This document shows, in pieces, positions 52,972 through 63,497 of a DNA stretch of 64,000 bases. This DNA is from Pocillopora damicornis. Taxonomy: Eukaryota. Below the pieces are notes generated by a model, which searched no databases, was not told where the DNA came from, and was given only the letters and a program-made list of their open reading frames with translations. Location of the stretch: NCBI RefSeq assembly GCF_003704095.1, contig NW_020844031.1, positions 248,001 through 312,000 of the forward strand, in the 5' to 3' direction. Positions within the stretch are counted from its first letter, which is position 1. The number at the start of each line of letters is the position of its first letter. Position numbers and translations under genes: made by a program.

Positions 52972-53071
52972 NNNNNNNNNNNNNNNNNNNNNNNNNNNNN
53001 NNNNNNNNNNNNNNNNNNNNNNNNNNNNNNNNNNNNNNNNNNNNNNNNNNNNNNNNNNNNNNNNNNNNNNN
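52972..53071. other. Scaffold gap (100 N)
   Basis: Run of exactly 100 N. Confidence 1.
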
Positions 53072-55024: not shown

Positions 55025-58000
55025 ATGAAGCTTTTAGTTACCATTATTCCCTTGTTCGTAGGTCTATCGACATTTTCACGGTAAGCTTTCGCTTTAATTT
55101 ATTTATGAAGATAAAATTAGATAGCAACAGTGCGATTAATGCGTCCTCGTTGTTGTAATAATACTTTTTCTGTCGTAAAGAAACACTCTAACGGTTGTAA
55201 GCTTATCATCTTGTATAAAAAGTATACAGGTCATGCGTGAGCAATTTAAAATTTAGTGCGCCGCTTGCCCTAACACACAAAGTAGTTGAAAGGCGTGGAG
55301 ATGCCGAGCTCAATTTCGCAACGGAATGACTGCTTAGTTTTGTTATAACTAGGGGCACTGTATTCTTCCTACTTCCTATGCATTCATATTTTTGTTTATT
55401 CAATTATTTGCGCATAAGCCAAGTTCTGAGTCACAGCTGGACTACTATTGATCCTGACCGAGCTAAGAAAACGATGCGCATCTATCTGCATCCTAGTGAG
55501 ATATCACCGCTAAGGGCGAGAAAGAGAGCTGCATGGAATCAGTTTGTATTCTAATGGAAATTATCAGCACTTTGGAGTATTCACTCTATCAAAAGATAAA
55601 CTGTAAGGAAATGAATTGAAAACTGCGCTGAACTGCCAGATCAAAAATCGCCTTTTATGGTTTAAGTATGGAGTGTGCTTTTTTTGGCCACTAAAGCCAC
55701 GCTGTCATGAAGCAATGATCATTATATTTGAATAAGTCACCTTCGCGCTCTAAACTATGGAAAATAACTGACGCGACTCTTATCTGTTGCGTAATTTTTA
55801 CGCACGATAGGTTTCAGCTCAAAAGACGCTTCGTTCCATATCAATAAACTTGATTTATGTATTGTGTGCATGTATTCCGCGACAACAACAAACACACGAA
55901 TACTATTTAAGGTCAAAGTGGCTCAAAATGGTTTCATTTTCCTCAGAACCAGGTCTTTGATGGTTCGAATTCGTGGTTACTATTTAAAACTGATCTTTAG
56001 AAGTGCAAAAGTTTGCAAATGTGACATTTTGCCCCATCAGTCGGTTGGCAGTCAGTAAAGGGCGTGTTCGCTCATCTGGAAAAATACGAGTTTATCGGAC
56101 CAAAACTGTAGAACAGTATGTAGCATTGATGTTGTGTCGGCACACTGGATTTTAAGCATAATAATGAAGCAGAAGAATCGAGTATTACACTGGAATAATA
56201 ACGCAAAATAAATGATTAAACAAACAATAACCTAAAGAAACCATTACATTGATTGTACTTATTTTTATGTTAATTAAAATGGAGCCTAACGGTGATGGTA
56301 TTTGAATTTTAGAGTGACATTTTCTGAGCACAAAGAATGAGCATAATAATGTAAAACATGGAGCCTAACTGAACGAATCTAATCAACACCCTTCTGTTAA
56401 TCTGCGCTCGTAGGAAAGCTTTGAGAAAATTAAAAAAAGTAAGAAAGCGTTCCATTTGATTGAAGTAAAGGGAGAGAATTGGAATTCGACCGTCAAGCTC
56501 CAAAACAAGAGTACACCACAACGATGATTTTTTTTTTGGCCGAAGATCATTGGTTTTTATTCCAATATCGGAAGCAATACTTAGAAAGTGAACAATACAG
56601 TACTAATACAATTTACGTTACAATACTTATAATACTATTAATAAAAAAACGTTGCTTAAATTTTTAATAAGGGAGAGTTTCAAAAACAACAACAAAACAC
56701 ATTAACACCAGTTATGTAAAGTAAATATAATTGTCAACACGCTAGGTTAAAAATTACGATACATGCTGGAAACAAAGTTCTTCGTGCCTACACCGAGAGT
56801 GCACCCCACCCCCTCCTAAGCCGATACTGAATTTTTACCAGACCCTAACATCCATTCTAAATGATTTGTGCTATGCTTTTGGTTTAAGGTTTGCCTCGGC
56901 TGTCGACTGTGAGGTGTCCCTACCTCAACACGCCTCCCCTAAGTGTGCAGCCATCAGAAATGATACTCTAAACAAACTCAAAGAAACTTATACCATGAAA
57001 CCAAGTCAATACAGCTTTGTGCTGTTGAACATGACCATTTCTGAGCTGGGAGCTGTCGCCCTAAAGGACCCATTTATCAGTTACTACGTCAGGGCATACG
57101 TGGGAATGACCCAGACAAATAACCAGATTTTAGCGAAGTACAATAACGCAACTGCAGGACAAGATATAACTGGATTGTCGGACTATCTCGAGATGTCAGA
57201 GTTTTTCCAGACAGTTCTAGAGCCAGTACTTGGGGTAAATATAATTTTCTTCCCTGTTTATGATGTAAGGGTGTTTTGAGACCTGCAAGAGGGCTCCACG
57301 ATTGGACAGCACAGCCATTGACAAAGCCCTCCTTACTAAAACTTTCCTCAGGAGTTCTTCACCTCAATAAAAATTTCACACGTGCAAAACAAAACAAATC
57401 CTGAGGTAAAAGGTTCAAACTTCTTCGCTCCCGTACACGGGACTTTCCCTCTACATAGCGTAGCTTTGTTCGGGTTGTTCCACTGAGCTCCCATGTTGAA
57501 GTTAGGGGGACTTCCAAGATGAATCCTGAGCGAGAGGAACAACCTTTTTTACTGTGGTCTTCGTTGCTGAGTTCCAGATGATGTCTCTTTTTCAGTTCTC
57601 GTTTCTATTCTTCAGGTATTCTCTAGATTTTCTAGAATTTTCCACCATCCTTCCACCTTGTGAGCTCCACCTCCAGACTTGTTTTCACAATAGCTGGTCT
57701 TACCAGTGGCCTTTTCTCGTAGCATTCGACCCACTAAGTCCATTCCTGTAAGGTTGTCATCTGATTCCAGTCAGTAAACAAATTAATTAATTATTTTTTC
57801 GCCTCTAGGAATATGTGAGGTCGGCTTCAAGGCACGAAGCATTTATCGACGACAAAACCCAATGGATTAGCGATAAATTTTTCGCTCAGCAGCGTCTAGC
57901 AGGGAATAACCCGTTGACAATCAGACGGGTAACCATGAAAGGTCAGTAAGGTAGAACTCATTTTTAATGCACGGCAAGAGATTATCAACCGACTTATAAT

Positions 58001-61000
58001 TTCTTGTATAGGGTCAAGTCTGTACTGAAACTAAATGGCCCACCCAGATAAACGCCATGGCCCAATGAATACTGCGCTGGACTCCGGGTCGAGTCCTGGC
58101 TTTGTCAAAGAGTATTGTTCTTGGAAAATATATTTGACGCTCACATTGCCTCTCTCCGCCCAGGAGCGTAAAAGGGCACCGGCGAATTGTCAGTATGACC
58201 GAAAAAATTGTGACAAACGTATACCCGGGGCAGCTGACAGTGGGATCATTGTAGTGCATTATGGGCCACCAGATCAGCTGAATGACATATTAACACAAAT
58301 GAGTACGTAGTGACAGACGGATGGACAGCGACACTGAACTGCCTACTGATAGTCTTAGGCTGCGTAACTGACAAACTGATGTAGTATATATATATATACA
58401 TATAGTAATACTGACTGTTTGCCCTGCCTCAGTGATAAAGACAATTTTTAATGTATGCAACTTAGGATGTGCAGCAAAGACAATTCAAGGGGCGTGTTGC
58501 CGTTTCCCGTTTAAATATCGTGGTAAAGTTTATCGTCAGTGTACGAGGGTAGGAAGCCATAGGCCTTGGTGTTTTACGGCGGCAAAGAAATGGGGAAAGA
58601 GACGGAAATGGGGATATTGTGCAGGTAGAATGAAACTTACTCTGATAATTCGTTCAGTAATTGTCTTAAATCATATTTCACTTTGTTGTCTTCCGTTAAA
58701 TCATGCGTTTATTTTTCTTTTGATTGATTTTTCATCTTTTGATGAAAAATTAAAACTGATCCTACACTTAACATACTTCAACTAAGAATGCATGCTCATG
58801 ATTTCACAACAGCAACACTTAGCGTTGCACCTAATGATATTTCTACGAGTTGTTACAGAGGTGCCAGAGCATAAGAATGAATATGACTAAATGGTAAAGT
58901 TTCATACCCAATATACGACACAAACATAGAAACCCATGTTTAGCGCCAATCTCTTACCCAGATCGTACCGTGTAATTGTAACTGTTTGGCCGTGAAAGGT
59001 CTTGGTATGAGACTAGTTCAGCCCTTAAAGCGGACACAATTTTACCATAAAGCCCACAATACCCATTTTGTTGTAGTTCTCGACGTTTCAATTTTTAAGT
59101 TAACATGATCACCACACTTCTTTCTCAGAACAAGAACCAGAAATATCAGGACTGGATTTCGGTATATTGAAGAAGACAATGAACCTTGACTTTGACTGGG
59201 ATGGTGCCGTCAGAGCGGCTTTGGGAACTGGTGGTTCTTTGGAAGATGTATGTTCGCTTAATTTGTTAACTTCAGTGACAAAAGTCTGAGGTGTGAGTGT
59301 GCATAAAAATCTCCTCGCGGAAAAATGGTGTCTCTGAGCTTTTAACATCAGGTTTTTCATTTTGATTTGTCTTAGTCTTTAACTATGACAGGAAAGTCTA
59401 GGAACGTTTCAACTTATATGGCCTAATCCTTGTTTGTATTGTACTTTAGGCGATAAAGCAGGGTCGCATTTATGCTCTTCGTTACGAGTTGTGCGACGAT
59501 TTGGGTCGAGCTCCTGACCTCACAGAAAGAGACCCTCAGAGGGAGATGTGGAATTTCCTTTCTCCCATCGCTTTTTTTGCATCAAAGACGGTTAGAGGAA
59601 AAAGGAATGAATTTGTACCTGTTGCTATACAAATGGACCACCCACCAGGTTAGCTACAATAGACGTTTTGGCAAATAATGAGACAAATACCATTGCATAA
59701 GAGTGACGACTGCACTCAGAAAAGTTACCACCAGTGGAAATTGTGGAGGAATTCCTGATACCTAACTGCACTATGTTCCTGCCTCTGTTACTCGTAATCT
59801 CGAGGCATGAGTTCCGTTACTGTAAGCTTAAACCCTTAAGACTCACTTTAACGTTATTTATATCATCTTTGCTAGATTCAGCGGTGTATACTCCAGCCGA
59901 TGGAGACAACTGGTTACTCGCCAAGCTTAATGTTCAGATCACAGACATCGGATATGCTCAAATCACTGAACATCTTGCCAAGGTAAAATCAGCTGAACAG
60001 TTCATTTATTACTAGGAATTAAGACGTAATTCATTTTTCGTGTAACAACAAGAGGAAAAAATATCAACACCCAATTTTCTATCGAATTTATTTGCAATTT
60101 AGCCGACAGATTTCTGGTCCCTCTGAAAAAAACTATCCTCTTTTTTACCTTTTGTTTGCTTTTTTTCTTGAGGGCATATTCAAACCCCTTAGCCTTCTAT
60201 TGGTTATCGGATGCTGCGTACCTACTGCACTGGCCTTTACGTACAGCTCTTCTAAACAAAACAGCTGGTTATCAAAATGCAAAAAGATTATAGCAAAGAA
60301 GTAATATCGCATAAGAAAATCAATTCAATCCCTATTTTAAAAAAAAACAAAATAGAACTAAACTGAATCAAAACAAAACAAGGGGAAATGATCTAGCGCC
60401 AAGGTGTAGGGTTTAGATTATTATTGGGGAAAGTGATTTACTATCAGTTTCAAACCAGCCCTTTCTGTAATATGAAGTGTCATATCGAGTAGTAGACATC
60501 CGTAAATAAGTGAAGAATATCTTCTTACAATCCTATAGATCCATTTCTTTGTGGAGCCCTTTTGTGTCTCTTTAAAACGTACCCTGCCGCCCATGCACCC
60601 GTTGAACCAAATGCTGAAGTATCATTGCCGAGAAGTGACCATCCCAAATACATTTGGAACACCTGTTCTTCTAGGCGATACTGGATTCGCAGCTTTGCTG
60701 TTTGCATATGGAAAAGAAGGGGCTTTAAAGCTTGTTCGAGATGTACATCCATTGACATCATGGGAAATAACTGACTACAGGGAAAACATCAAGGTATTTT
60801 TTATCCCTCACGGTACTTAGCTTGAAATATACCAGAGGGTATCACCCTTGCGCTACATATTTAATACTTCTTTAGATTATCTACGTTTCTGTGGCGTAAA
60901 AGCATATTTTTACTTTCCCAACAAAAAAATACTTCGTCTGGAATATCTTAATGTGTCCTTTTCAGGCTTCTCCTGAAAAAGTATCCTAACTGTTTAAGGG

Positions 61001-63497
61001 TGTAGAATGGTCTTCTAGATACTTTTATGGAAGCGTATAGCCATTCAGATCTGAGGAACGATCCTACATTTTCATGTAAATTTACGAGAATTTGAACAAA
61101 CAGAAAACTCTACACGACAATTCAAATATGCAGGACTTTCGAGCTAATCGTGCATAGGCAAAATGATGAACACTTGAAAAGTTTAAGGGAGCATTCACCA
61201 CTTCCCATTTGCATGTTATACAAGAAAGGATACTGAGAGTAATGGTGTTTGTCGAAACATTTTATACTAGACTGTGTTATAGTATCACCAATGTATAGAT
61301 TCTTCATACTGGTGGCCTCCTAATTTCAACTTGTTGAATTTTTAACTAAATTGTAAATTTATCTATGTTGTTGAGCGCATCTATATAATTCAATTCTAAT
61401 TTTGGGAATTAACTTCAAGTATTTCAAAATTTCCTTACGGTAATCAATTAAGGTCATTTCAACCAAGCTAGTGTTGCTTTATTTTAACCAGAAACGTGGA
61501 ATGTTCGACAGGAATCTTCTACCATACTATCCTTTCCGAGATGATGGTTTGGTGATCTTAAAAGTAATCGAAGATCTAGTGAGGAGTTACATTGACTTGT
61601 AAGTGAAACCGTAGATATACATTCGACTCGATATCTGTATAATCTGTTTATTCTGACTTGTATGATCTGGTTTGACAAAAATGAAAACAATAACAGTTGA
61701 ATAAAGGAAACTAAACGAAACGAAACAATGCGAAATGAAATACTACCCACGAAATTTGTAAGTCTGAAGGAAAACTTGATCCATCCAAACGCAAAACTCA
61801 TGAGCACATGGTCTAGACCATAATACGCATATCTAACCCAGTACCGCGCGGGCAGAGCAAAACTAACTGAGATGCTTTGCAATCAACAGAAATTGTATGC
61901 TGCAATGTTCTAAATCCATGCTCTAAGGAGCATTGGGAGAATTTTCTTGTCAATAGGAAAACAAATGAAGGAAAAAAAATGGGTAACCGTTCTGATAATG
62001 ACGGCATACAATGGTTTCATTTTTTTTTTCTTTTGTGCCGATCGATCAAAGCTTTGTTTGACTTAGACGACACTTAGGAATAAAAGTTAAAAAAACTGGG
62101 AAGCACCAAACTGGTAGTACAAAAGCAAGAAGGAACAAAAACTGATGCCTGAGATGGAGGAGATTAAAAAGGATTCCAAATGAAGATTTTGTAAATTGAT
62201 TGGTTCAACGTTTTTTCGTTGCACACCTCACGACGCAGCACTGTTAAGTTAACAATCTAGACTAATGGCGATCAAAGCAGGGAATGAAAATCAAATTCAA
62301 ATTTTGTGACTTTTTTCGTTTAGGTATTACAGAAGTGATCAAAACGTGAAGGAAGATGTGGAACTACAGGCGTACCTGAATGAGGTGTCACTGGATGGAA
62401 CTGGACCGAATGGAGGAATTGGTCAGGTATATTAAAATGTGGGTTATGGAAAACCTCAGGTGTACCAAAACCATTGTTAGTCATACCCATCTGATGATGT
62501 ATTGATGTCTTTATTGAAAACTTGTGCAGCATGATGCATGTACTCACAAGGTTCCTTGTAGATTGTCACTTGGGGTTGGGTCAGTACAGATCAGTACAGG
62601 CAATGAGTTCGAAACAAAACCGAGGTGTAACAACAAACACAGGTTGTACGCTTGCTTGAGAAGAACGACTTAACGTAGCCTTAGGATCCAAACTGGCTGA
62701 TCACGAGCGACTTACGCTTCTTGAGTAAGCCACGTCACAATGTACACATCACAAAATTGATCAATCAGTTTTAAAAGACAAGAGTTGTAAACCGCCTCAA
62801 CTTACAAAGAGCTTCCTATTTGATGCTGATGATGACTTTCGCCTTGGGATCAAACCGCTAGCCACAACTATAGATTAACGTCATTAACGTCAAGATCTGA
62901 ACAAGAGATTTCTACATGAACTGTTAATCCACAAGGTTTCATATAGTTTTTTTAGATCACTGAAGAAATTTTTGGTCGAAGAAATACCATTGAGTGACAA
63001 AAAAGTGCTTGTTTGTCTGTCAGTCTTTATCTTTGATGTCTTCAACAAATAAGCCCATCAGAACGATCCATCCTTACTTATGAATCGAAAGTCAGGAATT
63101 TATCCCACTTGAGTCTTGTGGCCAATTCAACCCTCCATGGCAAAATTGGCCTATACTATAAGACCACGGGATCACAATTTTTTGTCTGTAATGCTACCTG
63201 AAATGTACGCCCTTTGCACATTCTATCATGTTGTAAGTTACCGCTAAGGCTGATGACATTTCGTTCTCTTCCTCGCAGATAAAAGGTTTACCACCAAGTG
63301 TTGATTCCAAAAGAGAGCTCTGTGAAATTCTAAGTCGTTTTATTTCCCACTTGACTATCTATCACGCGTCGGTCAATTACGTTACAACGGATTACCCAGA
63401 ATACATCCCCAACCAACCAACTAAACTTTATAACGACTCCAGAGTGGAAGATGGACAATTCTCCTTTCTGCGACTGCCAAACAGAGCTGCAAGCGCA
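55025..63497 (+). CDS. Putatively secreted lipoxygenase with inserted fibronectin type II domain, 3' end beyond the window. Exons 55025-55080, 56889-57234, 57352-57405, 57809-57941, 58466-58624 (FN2), 59129-59247, 59450-59648, 59876-59982, 60539-60793, 61492-61598, 62324-62426, 63279-63497
   Basis: LOX motifs WISDKFFAQQRLAGNNP, PVAIQ, WLLAK...QITEHLAKIH, HPL...HCR, YPFRDDG, DVELQAYLNEV and HASVN. All phases are compatible. N-terminus MKLLVTIIPLFVGLSTFSRFASA looks like a signal peptide. Confidence 0.9.
58050..58210 (+). mobile_element. Diverged SINE in LOX intron
   Basis: ccgggtcgagtcctggc...tcacattgcctctctccgcccaggagcgtaaaagggcaccggcgaattg resembles the core at 18093. Confidence 0.45.
58466..58624 (+). 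CDS. Fibronectin type II domain exon (phase 1-1, 159 nt) within the lipoxygenase
   Basis: ttag|GCAAKTIQGACCRFPFKYRGKVYRQCTRVGSHRPWCFTAAKKWGKRRKWGYCA|gtagaa has the canonical C-x-FPF-x-Y-x-G...CT...PWC-x-T...WGYC pattern. Confidence 0.85.

Follow-up and report, generated by a model that had tools for sequence, protein, structure and literature searches.

Lipoxygenases (LOXs) are usually regarded as enzymes of the cytosol, with a PLAT domain that brings them to membranes. In 5-LOX, mutational changes at His367, the first iron-ligand histidine, abolish activity. The insertion of an extracellular module into a catalytic domain is known from a different fold. In the gelatinases MMP-2 and MMP-9, which are secreted metalloenzymes, fibronectin type II (FN2) modules interrupt the catalytic domain, and each module appears to occupy a symmetric exon of its own.

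The locus described here lies in a 64,000-nucleotide window of the Pocillopora damicornis genome (RefSeq assembly GCF_003704095.1, contig NW_020844031.1, positions 248,001 to 312,000 of the forward strand). It likewise encodes a nested FN2 module, in this case within the catalytic domain of a LOX-family protein with a signal-like leader. All coordinates are given as positions of the window, and all exons are on the plus strand.

Exon organization and lipoxygenase fold

The gene is composed of 12 exons that extend from 55025 to ~64595 and encode a product of ~678 residues. A database protein, P0147, which is ~98% identical by tblastn, served as a proxy for the gene product, and the exons were searched singly. 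Exon 1 (55025–55080) contains the ATG and an 18-codon hydrophobic leader that looks like a signal peptide by eye, and ends at a GTAAGC donor. Its cleavage-type motif, FASA|VDC, is completed by exon 2. Exon 1 is supported by RNA contigs X1 and X17, whose loose ends before 56888 match 55050–55079. Runs X5 and X6, like P0147, show an alternative leader beginning MENNWF, which matches nothing in this assembly. The assembly contains a gap at 52972–53071.

Exon 2 (56889–57234) encodes the start of the mature protein, with a CEVSLPQ motif, N-glycosylation sequons and the N-terminal helices of the LOX catalytic domain, and carries no PLAT. It is 97% identical to P0147 residues 19–135 by tblastn, and the region forms helices 37–137 in an AF2 model. 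The SLPQ part of the motif is common to this protein and bacterial relatives. The joint 57234>57809 is seen in four RNA runs and leads into exon 3 (57809–57941), a LOX exon that ends with ...QRLAGNNPLTIRRVTMK in phase 1 at a GTCAGT donor. The exon can also be written as closing with ...NNPLTIRRVTMK in phase 1, and its joints on both sides are present in four runs. The FN2 module occupies exon 4 (58466–58624).

The LOX sequence resumes in phase 1 in exon 5 (59129–59247; EQEPEISGLDF...). Exon 6 (59450–59648) encodes the LOX β-subdomain and is 100% identical to P0147 residues 273–338 by tblastn. Exon 7 (59876–59982) contains the WLLAK helix with ...GYAQITEHLAK, in which alanine stands at the first iron-ligand histidine and the second histidine is present. 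Exon 8 (60539–60793) encodes the LOX core (IHFFVEPF...HPLNQMLKYH...), and its sequence matches in the PDB include PA-LOX and 11R-LOX. Exons 5 to 8 are all defined by RNA joints.

The 3′ part of the gene was traced by RNA contigs and tblastn. Exon 9 (61492–61598) is entered by the joint 60793>61492 in three runs, and a loose end past 61601 runs into exon 10 (62324–62426). A contig loose end, TTACAGAAGTGATC..., matches 62327 onward, and tblastn aligns exon 10 with P0147 residues 496–530. Exon 11 (63279–63497), also found by tblastn, encodes the second ligand cluster, ...IYHASVN..., with its histidine and asparagine. The first-pass annotation had ended the gene at 63497, which is the end of exon 11 only. 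Exon 12 lies beyond the window, at the window-equivalent positions 64362–64595 (L041:362–595), where its splice sites and stop codon can be read and the protein ends with ...PNGIQT.

The exons that flank FN2 match the LOX profile PF00305 colinearly, at profile positions 184–214 before the module (exon 3) and 355–410 (exon 8), 458–482, 483–508 and 519–563 after it. Searched singly, the window exons score 13–23 bits each; the whole of P0147 reaches 139 bits (cut-off 23.6), together with 41 bits for the FN2 profile PF00040. The AF2 model has a pLDDT of 92.4 and a pTM of 0.88, with pLDDT values of 70–88 in the FN2 module. It can be superimposed on coral 8R-LOX (4QWT) with a Z score of 39.8 and an rmsd of 2.5 Å over 537 residues (VIA-align), and Foldseek gives an E value of 6e-30. 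In silico, the predicted protein thus comprises a complete LOX catalytic domain and an FN2 module. A look-up in the ESM Atlas returned generic LOX clusters only, with scores <0.9.

The N-terminal PLAT/C2-like β-barrel that typifies eukaryotic LOXs has no Pfam match in P0147. In 8R-LOX the structural alignment begins past the PLAT domain, at chain residue 110; in CspLOX2, which has no PLAT, it begins with residue 1. A LOX homolog that is predicted to be secreted and carries an extracellular module is supported, with the leader judged by eye. When exon 8 is searched alone, its best PDB sequence match is PA-LOX. A bacterial origin or gene transfer is not claimed, as the whole protein is matched no less closely by human 5-LOX and coral 8R-LOX.

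The FN2 exon in transcripts and across corals

Exon 4 is a cassette of 159 nt in phase 1-1, bounded by an AG acceptor and a GTAGAA donor and encoding six cysteines. The sequence reads as first annotated, with this exon set between phase-1 LOX exons, and the Pfam scan gives the nested arrangement that had been proposed, PF00040 in exon 4 and PF00305 on both flanks. The match to PF00040 covers the full profile (1–42 of 42) with an E value of 1.8e-12 and 47.5 bits (cut-off 22.2). The four canonical cysteines and the aromatic core of FN2 are present and can be read in CRFPFKY, QCTR, PWCF and WGYC. The two extra cysteines (C...CC) are common to a Porites harrisoni copy and a six-module Montipora copy. 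Within the PDB, the module matches the FN2 modules of MMP-2 and MMP-9 (1EAK, E value 5.7e-14; 1L6J) and PDC-109 by sequence. The 62-residue stretch between the flanking conserved motifs, with FN2 inside, contains 15 lysines and arginines versus three aspartates and glutamates and is strongly cationic. Within the LOX catalytic domain, the insertion separates the β-strand IRRVT from the helices that follow.

The joints 57941>58466 and 58624>59129, with GT..AG ends, had been named as the RNA-level check of this arrangement, and both were found in RNA contigs from four independent studies, one run each. A skipping joint, 57941>59129, is not among the joints listed for the RNA contigs of these four runs. 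The FN2 exon is part of the dominant mRNA. A nested or separate transcript can be discarded because single contigs bridge exons 2–8 through FN2: both X1 record 2 (1332 nt) and X6 record 17 (1468 nt) cover exons 2, 3 and 5–8 together with the FN2 exon.

It is highly improbable that the FN2 exon falls outside the functional LOX protein, whether because it belongs to a nested or separate transcript, is a fragment that is only rarely exonised or is an artefact of the assembly. Such a reading could draw on the Montipora NCBI isoform models without FN2, on a minor joint, 57941>58010, and on transcripts that begin in intron 3 (P0167). However, high-depth contigs from the four runs and four studies show it placed after exon 3 and before exon 5, the Pfam match is full-length with all cysteine and aromatic positions, and at least five coral genera have kept FN2 in this position.

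These genera, identified among database proteins, are Montipora, Porites, Oculina, Desmophyllum and Pocillopora, and all carry FN2 at exactly this site of the LOX. The architecture search across cnidarians that had been suggested from the first reading returned the same site in at least five genera of stony corals. The number of modules at the site is 0, 1, 2 or 6, in both major stony-coral lineages. Some Montipora isoform models differ by the FN2 block alone, with a gap of 53 or 113 residues at residue 182. In the tree, the FN2-bearing rows of both lineages fall inside one scleractinian clade. The FN2-LOX architecture is old.

A profile search of the genome gave 75 FN2 matches and 32 LOX matches, and this locus alone has both on one contig. 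A convergent paralog 10 kb downstream contains no FN2 in the corresponding intron of 340 bp. Other relatives possess other extracellular modules, an EGF module in P0225 and a weak EMI match in P0050. Literature searches turned up no paper that describes FN2 within the catalytic domain of a LOX, nor one on the secreted anthozoan clade. Coral FN2-LOX models are held in databases under generic names and are not described in the literature found.

The first-pass annotation had explained the module by exon shuffling into a secreted LOX. This part of the proposal fits the observations, since the FN2 cassette is symmetric in phase 1-1 and spliced in, the module count ranges from 0 to 6, a leader is present and PLAT is missing. 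Its second part, an extracellular oxylipin-generating system, is unsupported in that form, given the metal site described below.

The metal-ligand site and possible functions

In alignments to CspLOX2 (5mee) and 5-LOX, the residue equivalent to His367 of 5-LOX, here termed His1, is Ala366 (...YAQITEH...). The first ligand cluster, which in LOXs consists of two histidines five residues apart (HxxxxH), is therefore incomplete. This feature is shared by the clade: His1 is present in only two of 59 aligned relatives, and S, A, N, V, G or T takes its place across the anthozoan clade. The second cluster, HxxxN, is present in exon 11 (...YHASVN...). Strong conservation extends to His371, His558, Asn562 and Glu370, the last being specific to the clade. 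Among the 57 relatives lacking His1, the second histidine is kept in 56, the third in 56, the asparagine in 53 and Glu370 in 48. In LOXs, the carboxylate of a C-terminal isoleucine or valine binds the metal. The tail ...PNGIQT aligns residue for residue with ...PNSVAI of 5-LOX. The terminal carboxylate is at the aligned position and belongs to threonine rather than isoleucine or valine, as it does in 46 of the 59 relatives.

With the loss of one of the usual iron-binding histidines, the protein may lack normal lipoxygenase function. A classical active LOX outside the cell, with FN2 docking it on membranes, microbes or matrix where it would generate oxylipins, is unlikely. The complete LOX fold, the WLLAK motif, the second histidine, the HxxxN cluster, the free C-terminal carboxylate and the signal-like leader agree with this reading, and the closest structural matches include two PLAT-less bacterial enzymes of solved structure, PA-LOX and CspLOX2. 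Against it stands the alanine at His1, the very position at which changes inactivate 5-LOX. Both iron-ligand clusters are described as essential for true ALOX sequences (PMC6612559), and this, together with the terminal threonine in place of isoleucine, also weakens the proposed oxylipin-generating system.

Alternatively, the LOX core may be a catalytically dead scaffold, a structural or lipid-binding component of the coral's extracellular or skeletal matrix in which the FN2 modules act as cross-linking or adhesive units. Such a pseudoenzyme is possible but doubtful. It would be in keeping with the clade-wide loss and variability of the first ligand, the terminal threonine, the requirement for both clusters in true ALOX sequences (PMC6612559) and the adhesive modules of relatives, namely the EGF of P0225 and the weak EMI match of P0050. 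According to a preprint, the skeletal organic matrix of Desmophyllum pertusum contains eight lipoxygenases. These are consistent with extracellular LOX-family proteins in corals and would also suit a matrix role if they belong to this clade; the accessible part of the preprint's supplement has no lipoxygenase entry. However, the three remaining side-chain ligands and many core residues are near invariant in the 57 relatives lacking His1. Conserved metal-site positions are hard to explain in a pseudoenzyme because the site would have no role.

We give about an even chance to the explanation we favor, an FN2-anchored, putatively secreted LOX homolog with a non-canonical metal centre, as judged from sequence conservation. 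The 12-exon stony-coral gene would produce a secreted, PLAT-less member of the LOX family with FN2 on one symmetric phase 1-1 exon. FN2 would serve as an extracellular anchoring cassette that replaces the missing membrane-targeting PLAT and attaches the protein to a ligand in the matrix or on a surface. Candidate ligands are collagen-like matrix and phosphocholine lipids; polyanions are a further candidate for this very cationic copy. The module count would set the valency. The core would still hold a metal without His1, in a non-canonical coordination sphere. Its extracellular substrates would be lipids or their hydroperoxides, and the reaction need not be that of a classical dioxygenase. A metal-holding, lipid-acting core is proposed because His371, His558, Asn562 and Glu370 are strongly conserved despite the loss of His1. 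The missing His1, the terminal threonine and the stated need of true ALOX sequences for both clusters (PMC6612559) also speak against this reading.

More speculatively, the FN2-anchored proteins might represent a class of matrix-tethered extracellular metalloenzymes in stony corals that has not yet been described. The centre would be rewired to His/His/Asn/terminal carboxylate, possibly plus Glu370. Alternative inclusion of 0–6 FN2 exons would tune the anchoring valency, and non-classical lipid or hydroperoxide chemistry would take place at the tissue–skeleton or tissue–seawater interface. This broader proposal is tentative.

An active protein would suggest extracellular lipid oxidation in the coral matrix, mucus or skeleton formation. 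An inactive one would show plainly how a lipoxygenase fold can become a matrix protein. In both cases, the name ‘polyunsaturated fatty acid 5-lipoxygenase-like’ and the KEGG annotation ALOX5, as used in coral expression studies, would be misleading for these genes.

Comparison with known systems

The fold is like that of animal and coral LOXs, including Plexaura 8R-LOX (4QWT/2FNQ), human 5-LOX (3O8Y) and 15-LOX-2, with Z scores of 38–40 and an rmsd of ~2.5 Å over ~535 residues. The alignment includes the WLLAK helix, the second histidine and the HxxxN cluster, and continues through the C-terminal PN-x-x-x-x tail to the last residue. However, those enzymes possess a PLAT/C2-like N terminus, whereas the coral FN2-LOX has a signal-like leader, a nested FN2, alanine in place of His1 and a threonine end. 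The anthozoan clade thus combines a signal-like leader, the lack of PLAT and the loss of a supposedly essential iron ligand with conservation of the rest of the site.

The bacterial enzymes Cyanothece CspLOX2 (5MED) and PA-LOX (4G32/5IR4) are PLAT-less too, and the model aligns with CspLOX2 over its whole chain (residues 1–569). CspLOX2 has a histidine where the coral FN2-LOX has alanine at the first iron-ligand position. The bacterial proteins contain no inserted module, whereas the coral gene is intron-rich, animal and part of an anthozoan clade.

The LCCL/LAP (CCp) proteins of Plasmodium are the sole case found in the literature of ‘lipoxygenase’ and FN2 in one extracellular protein. Their domain is, however, a PLAT/LH2 ‘lipoxygenase homology’ domain and not the catalytic domain, and their architecture is unrelated to that of the coral gene.

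The gelatinases are of metzincin rather than lipoxygenase fold. The number of FN2 modules is fixed at three in the MMPs and ranges from zero to six in the corals, and the FN2 of this gene differs from that of gelatinases in an extra cysteine pair and its strongly cationic character. With a variable FN2 array placed inside the LOX catalytic domain, stony corals display the same evolutionary trick as the gelatinases.

Gene structure and splicing of the FN2 exon

The gene is composed of 12 exons on the plus strand, with GT..AG at all borders and consistent phases, and encodes a lipoxygenase (LOX)-like product of 678 aa. Exons 1–3 lie at 55025–55080, 56889–57234 and 57809–57941, exon 4 at 58466–58624, and exons 5–11 at 59129–59247, 59450–59648, 59876–59982, 60539–60793, 61492–61598, 62324–62426 and 63279–63497. 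Exon 12 lies beyond the window, at L041:362–595 on the same contig. The model was built from RNA joints, loose ends of RNA contigs and tblastn with P0147, a 679-aa protein with 46 member sequences, drawn from public transcript assemblies, that stands in for the product. P0147 is 94–100% identical to exons 2 and 5–12. Over exons 3–4 its local tblastn alignments extend into the intron, and its text RRVTMK-G-CAAKTIQGACC...WGYCA-EQEPEISGLDF matches exons 3, 4 and 5 exactly.

Exon 3 ends with ...QRLAGNNPLTIRRVTMK plus one base of the following codon, and exon 5 starts in phase 1 at 59129. Between them, exon 4 (159 nt, bordered by AG and GT) encodes a fibronectin type II (FN2) module. Its 52 full codons cover the Pfam fn2 profile in full (PF00040, 1–42 of 42; E 1.8e-12; 47.5 bits, cut-off 22.2 bits), and its translation contains six cysteines. 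Searched singly, the remaining exons yield colinear matches to the LOX profile PF00305 on both sides of the insert. These borders, phases and Pfam matches bear out the first-pass annotation, which had placed an FN2 exon in phase between LOX exons.

RNA contigs from four runs of four different studies were aligned over 56000–61990. The predicted joints 57941>58466 and 58624>59129, with GT..AG ends, are both present in all four runs, on the highest-depth contigs. X1 record 2 (1332 nt) and X6 record 17 (1468 nt), from two of these runs, each extend as one contig across exons 2, 3, FN2 and 5 to 8. The skipping joint 57941>59129 is not among the listed joints of the four runs; since contigs lose rare variants, a minor FN2-skipped form may accompany the included form. 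Direct splicing of 57941 to 59129 in all transcripts is ruled out by the FN2-exon joints, and a separate nested transcript by the single contigs spanning exons 2 to 8.

Run X5 also contains a minor joint, 57941>58010, into intron 3 (depth 4). P0167, from a related pocilloporid, represents transcripts whose open frame begins inside intron 3 and continues into the FN2 exon. Both may reflect intron retention or an internal start. Upstream of 56884, some transcripts of runs X5 and X6 and the protein P0147 carry another signal-like leader (MENNWFILVASFIIFLSPF...), joined straight to exon 2. The DNA of this leader has no match in the assembly at up to three mismatches; it may come from a different haplotype or species, or from a first exon missing from the assembly. 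Short interspersed repeats occupy 58070–58193 (intron 3) and 58948–59016 (intron 4). The latter has at least 25 copies of 74–87% identity on other contigs, and other repeat copies are the source of the RNA contigs that have loose ends at 58948 and 58983. An assembly gap lies at 52972–53071. Within the FN2 module, 58555 A>G (Ser30Gly) occurs in one run and 58591 T>C (Trp42Arg) in three of the four, and 58560 T>C differs silently between runs; the cysteine and core aromatic positions are unaffected.

A LOX-like paralog lies on the minus strand (L041:9739–9984 and L042:627–7877; about 321700–329900 of the contig), about 10 kb downstream and tail-to-tail with the FN2-LOX gene. It corresponds to the 627-aa NCBI protein 'arachidonate 5-lipoxygenase-like isoform X1 [Pocillopora damicornis]' (P0148). 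The paralog shares the exon layout of the FN2-LOX gene and has no FN2 exon, the corresponding site being a plain intron of about 340 bp. Within this genome, FN2 and LOX occur together at this locus only.

Leader, fold and FN2 module

The protein combines a secretory-type leader, a LOX fold lacking the PLAT domain, and a spliced-in, conserved FN2 cassette. The N terminus (MK, a hydrophobic run, then ...FASA/VDC) resembles a signal peptide. This layout recurs in relatives, where a conserved CEVSLPQ motif and N-glycosylation sequons come next. Pfam returns only PF00305 (139 bits) and PF00040 for P0147, and no PLAT domain.

An AF2 model built with an alignment of 59 relatives has a mean pLDDT of 92.4 and a pTM of 0.88. 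For the catalytic domain of the coral enzyme 8R-LOX, superposition gives a Z score of 39.8 and an rmsd of 2.5 Å over 537 residues. The alignment starts past the PLAT domain of 8R-LOX. Cyanobacterial CspLOX2, also PLAT-less, is aligned over its whole chain (1–569). The FN2 module (residues 181–233) is modelled with pLDDT 70–88, except for a cationic loop (221–224) below 50, and lies between strand IRRVT (174–177) and the helices entering the β-rich part of the domain. Among solved structures, it is closest to the FN2 repeats of MMP-2, MMP-9, PDC-109, factor XII and fibronectin.

The FN2 module would anchor the protein to a ligand outside the cell. The window copy and its nearest relatives are strongly cationic: in the window, the 62 aa that separate the flanking conserved motifs and include FN2 contain 15 K+R versus 3 D+E, and in the Porites harrisoni copy the count is 17 versus 4. 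This charge suggests polyanionic partners besides the classical FN2 ligands. Eight lipoxygenases, not assigned to the FN2-LOX clade, were reported from the skeletal organic matrix of Desmophyllum pertusum (preprint), consistent with extracellular LOX-family proteins in corals.

An altered catalytic site

The site was mapped by HMMER alignments to CspLOX2 and human 5-LOX. Ala366 occupies the position of the first iron-ligand histidine (His367 in 5-LOX). The next ligand, His371, the HxxxN cluster (His558 and Asn562) and the C-terminus position all align, and the C-terminal residue is Thr. His occupies the first position in only two rows of a 59-row alignment, both distant; in the other 57 the residue there is S, A, N, V, G, T, L or Q. 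Among these 57 rows, His371 and His558 are each retained in 56, Asn562 in 53, Glu370, directly before His371, in 48, and the terminal Thr in 46.

Because the first iron-ligand histidine is absent, the family lacks one defining feature of a lipoxygenase enzyme. A dead site is unlikely, the remainder being conserved too well, and this strong conservation leads us to favor a metal centre with an altered ligand set, of which Glu370 may be part. Bacterial LOX homologs (P0226–P0235) carry Asn in place of the first ligand histidine (N-x-N-Q-x-V-N-H-L) and end in ...PNSTSV; loss of this residue is thus not limited to cnidarians. The FN2-in-LOX observation is confirmed, and its interpretation as an extracellular oxylipin-generating LOX is partly supported: the leader and the spliced, conserved FN2 support an extracellular module, but oxylipin production is not supported.

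Relatives and known systems

A search with Montipora P0006 (E <= 1e-10) recovered 124 relatives. Precomputed LOX plus FN2 architectures occur in Montipora capricornis, M. foliosa, Porites lutea, Oculina patagonica, Desmophyllum pertusum and transcript assemblies; P. harrisoni P0149 contains an FN2-type insert missed by Pfam's precomputed list. Between motifs NP..I..VT and GLDW lie 0, 1, 2 or 6 FN2 modules, with six Pfam stretches in P0130. Two pairs of M. foliosa NCBI isoform models are identical within each pair apart from one junction residue and a single gap at residue 182, of 53 aa in the first pair and 113 aa in the second; in these predicted models, this would be the expected outcome of phase-1 cassette exon skipping.

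In a quick-search tree with FN2 blocks removed and SH-aLRT support only, all these LOX-like proteins form a single scleractinian clade (support 100). FN2-bearing rows of Montipora and Porites are intermingled with those of Pocillopora, Oculina and Desmophyllum, and one subclade of 14 rows is without FN2. This mixing of both lineages in one clade places the insertion before the two major lineages of stony corals diverged. No FN2 was found in the sea-anemone relatives (Nematostella, Actinia, Actinostola and Actineria) among the 124. Other secreted LOX-like relatives, P0225 and P0214, contain EGF (PF00008) and PF26431 modules, and Nematostella P0050 has a weak N-terminal EMI match below cut-off (E 0.0038). 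Mosaic extracellular architectures seem recurrent in this secreted family.

NCBI and UniProt name these proteins '5-lipoxygenase-like' or 'allene oxide synthase-lipoxygenase-like'. Literature searches yielded no paper on a LOX whose catalytic domain contains FN2, or on a secreted LOX-like clade without the first histidine. In the papers searched, FN2 and 'lipoxygenase' co-occur solely in Plasmodium LAP proteins, in which FN2 is paired with a PLAT 'lipoxygenase homology' domain, whereas the coral module lies in the catalytic domain. The nearest analogy is provided by the gelatinases, whose FN2 repeats are situated inside a metalloprotease catalytic domain as the coral FN2 is inside that of a LOX.
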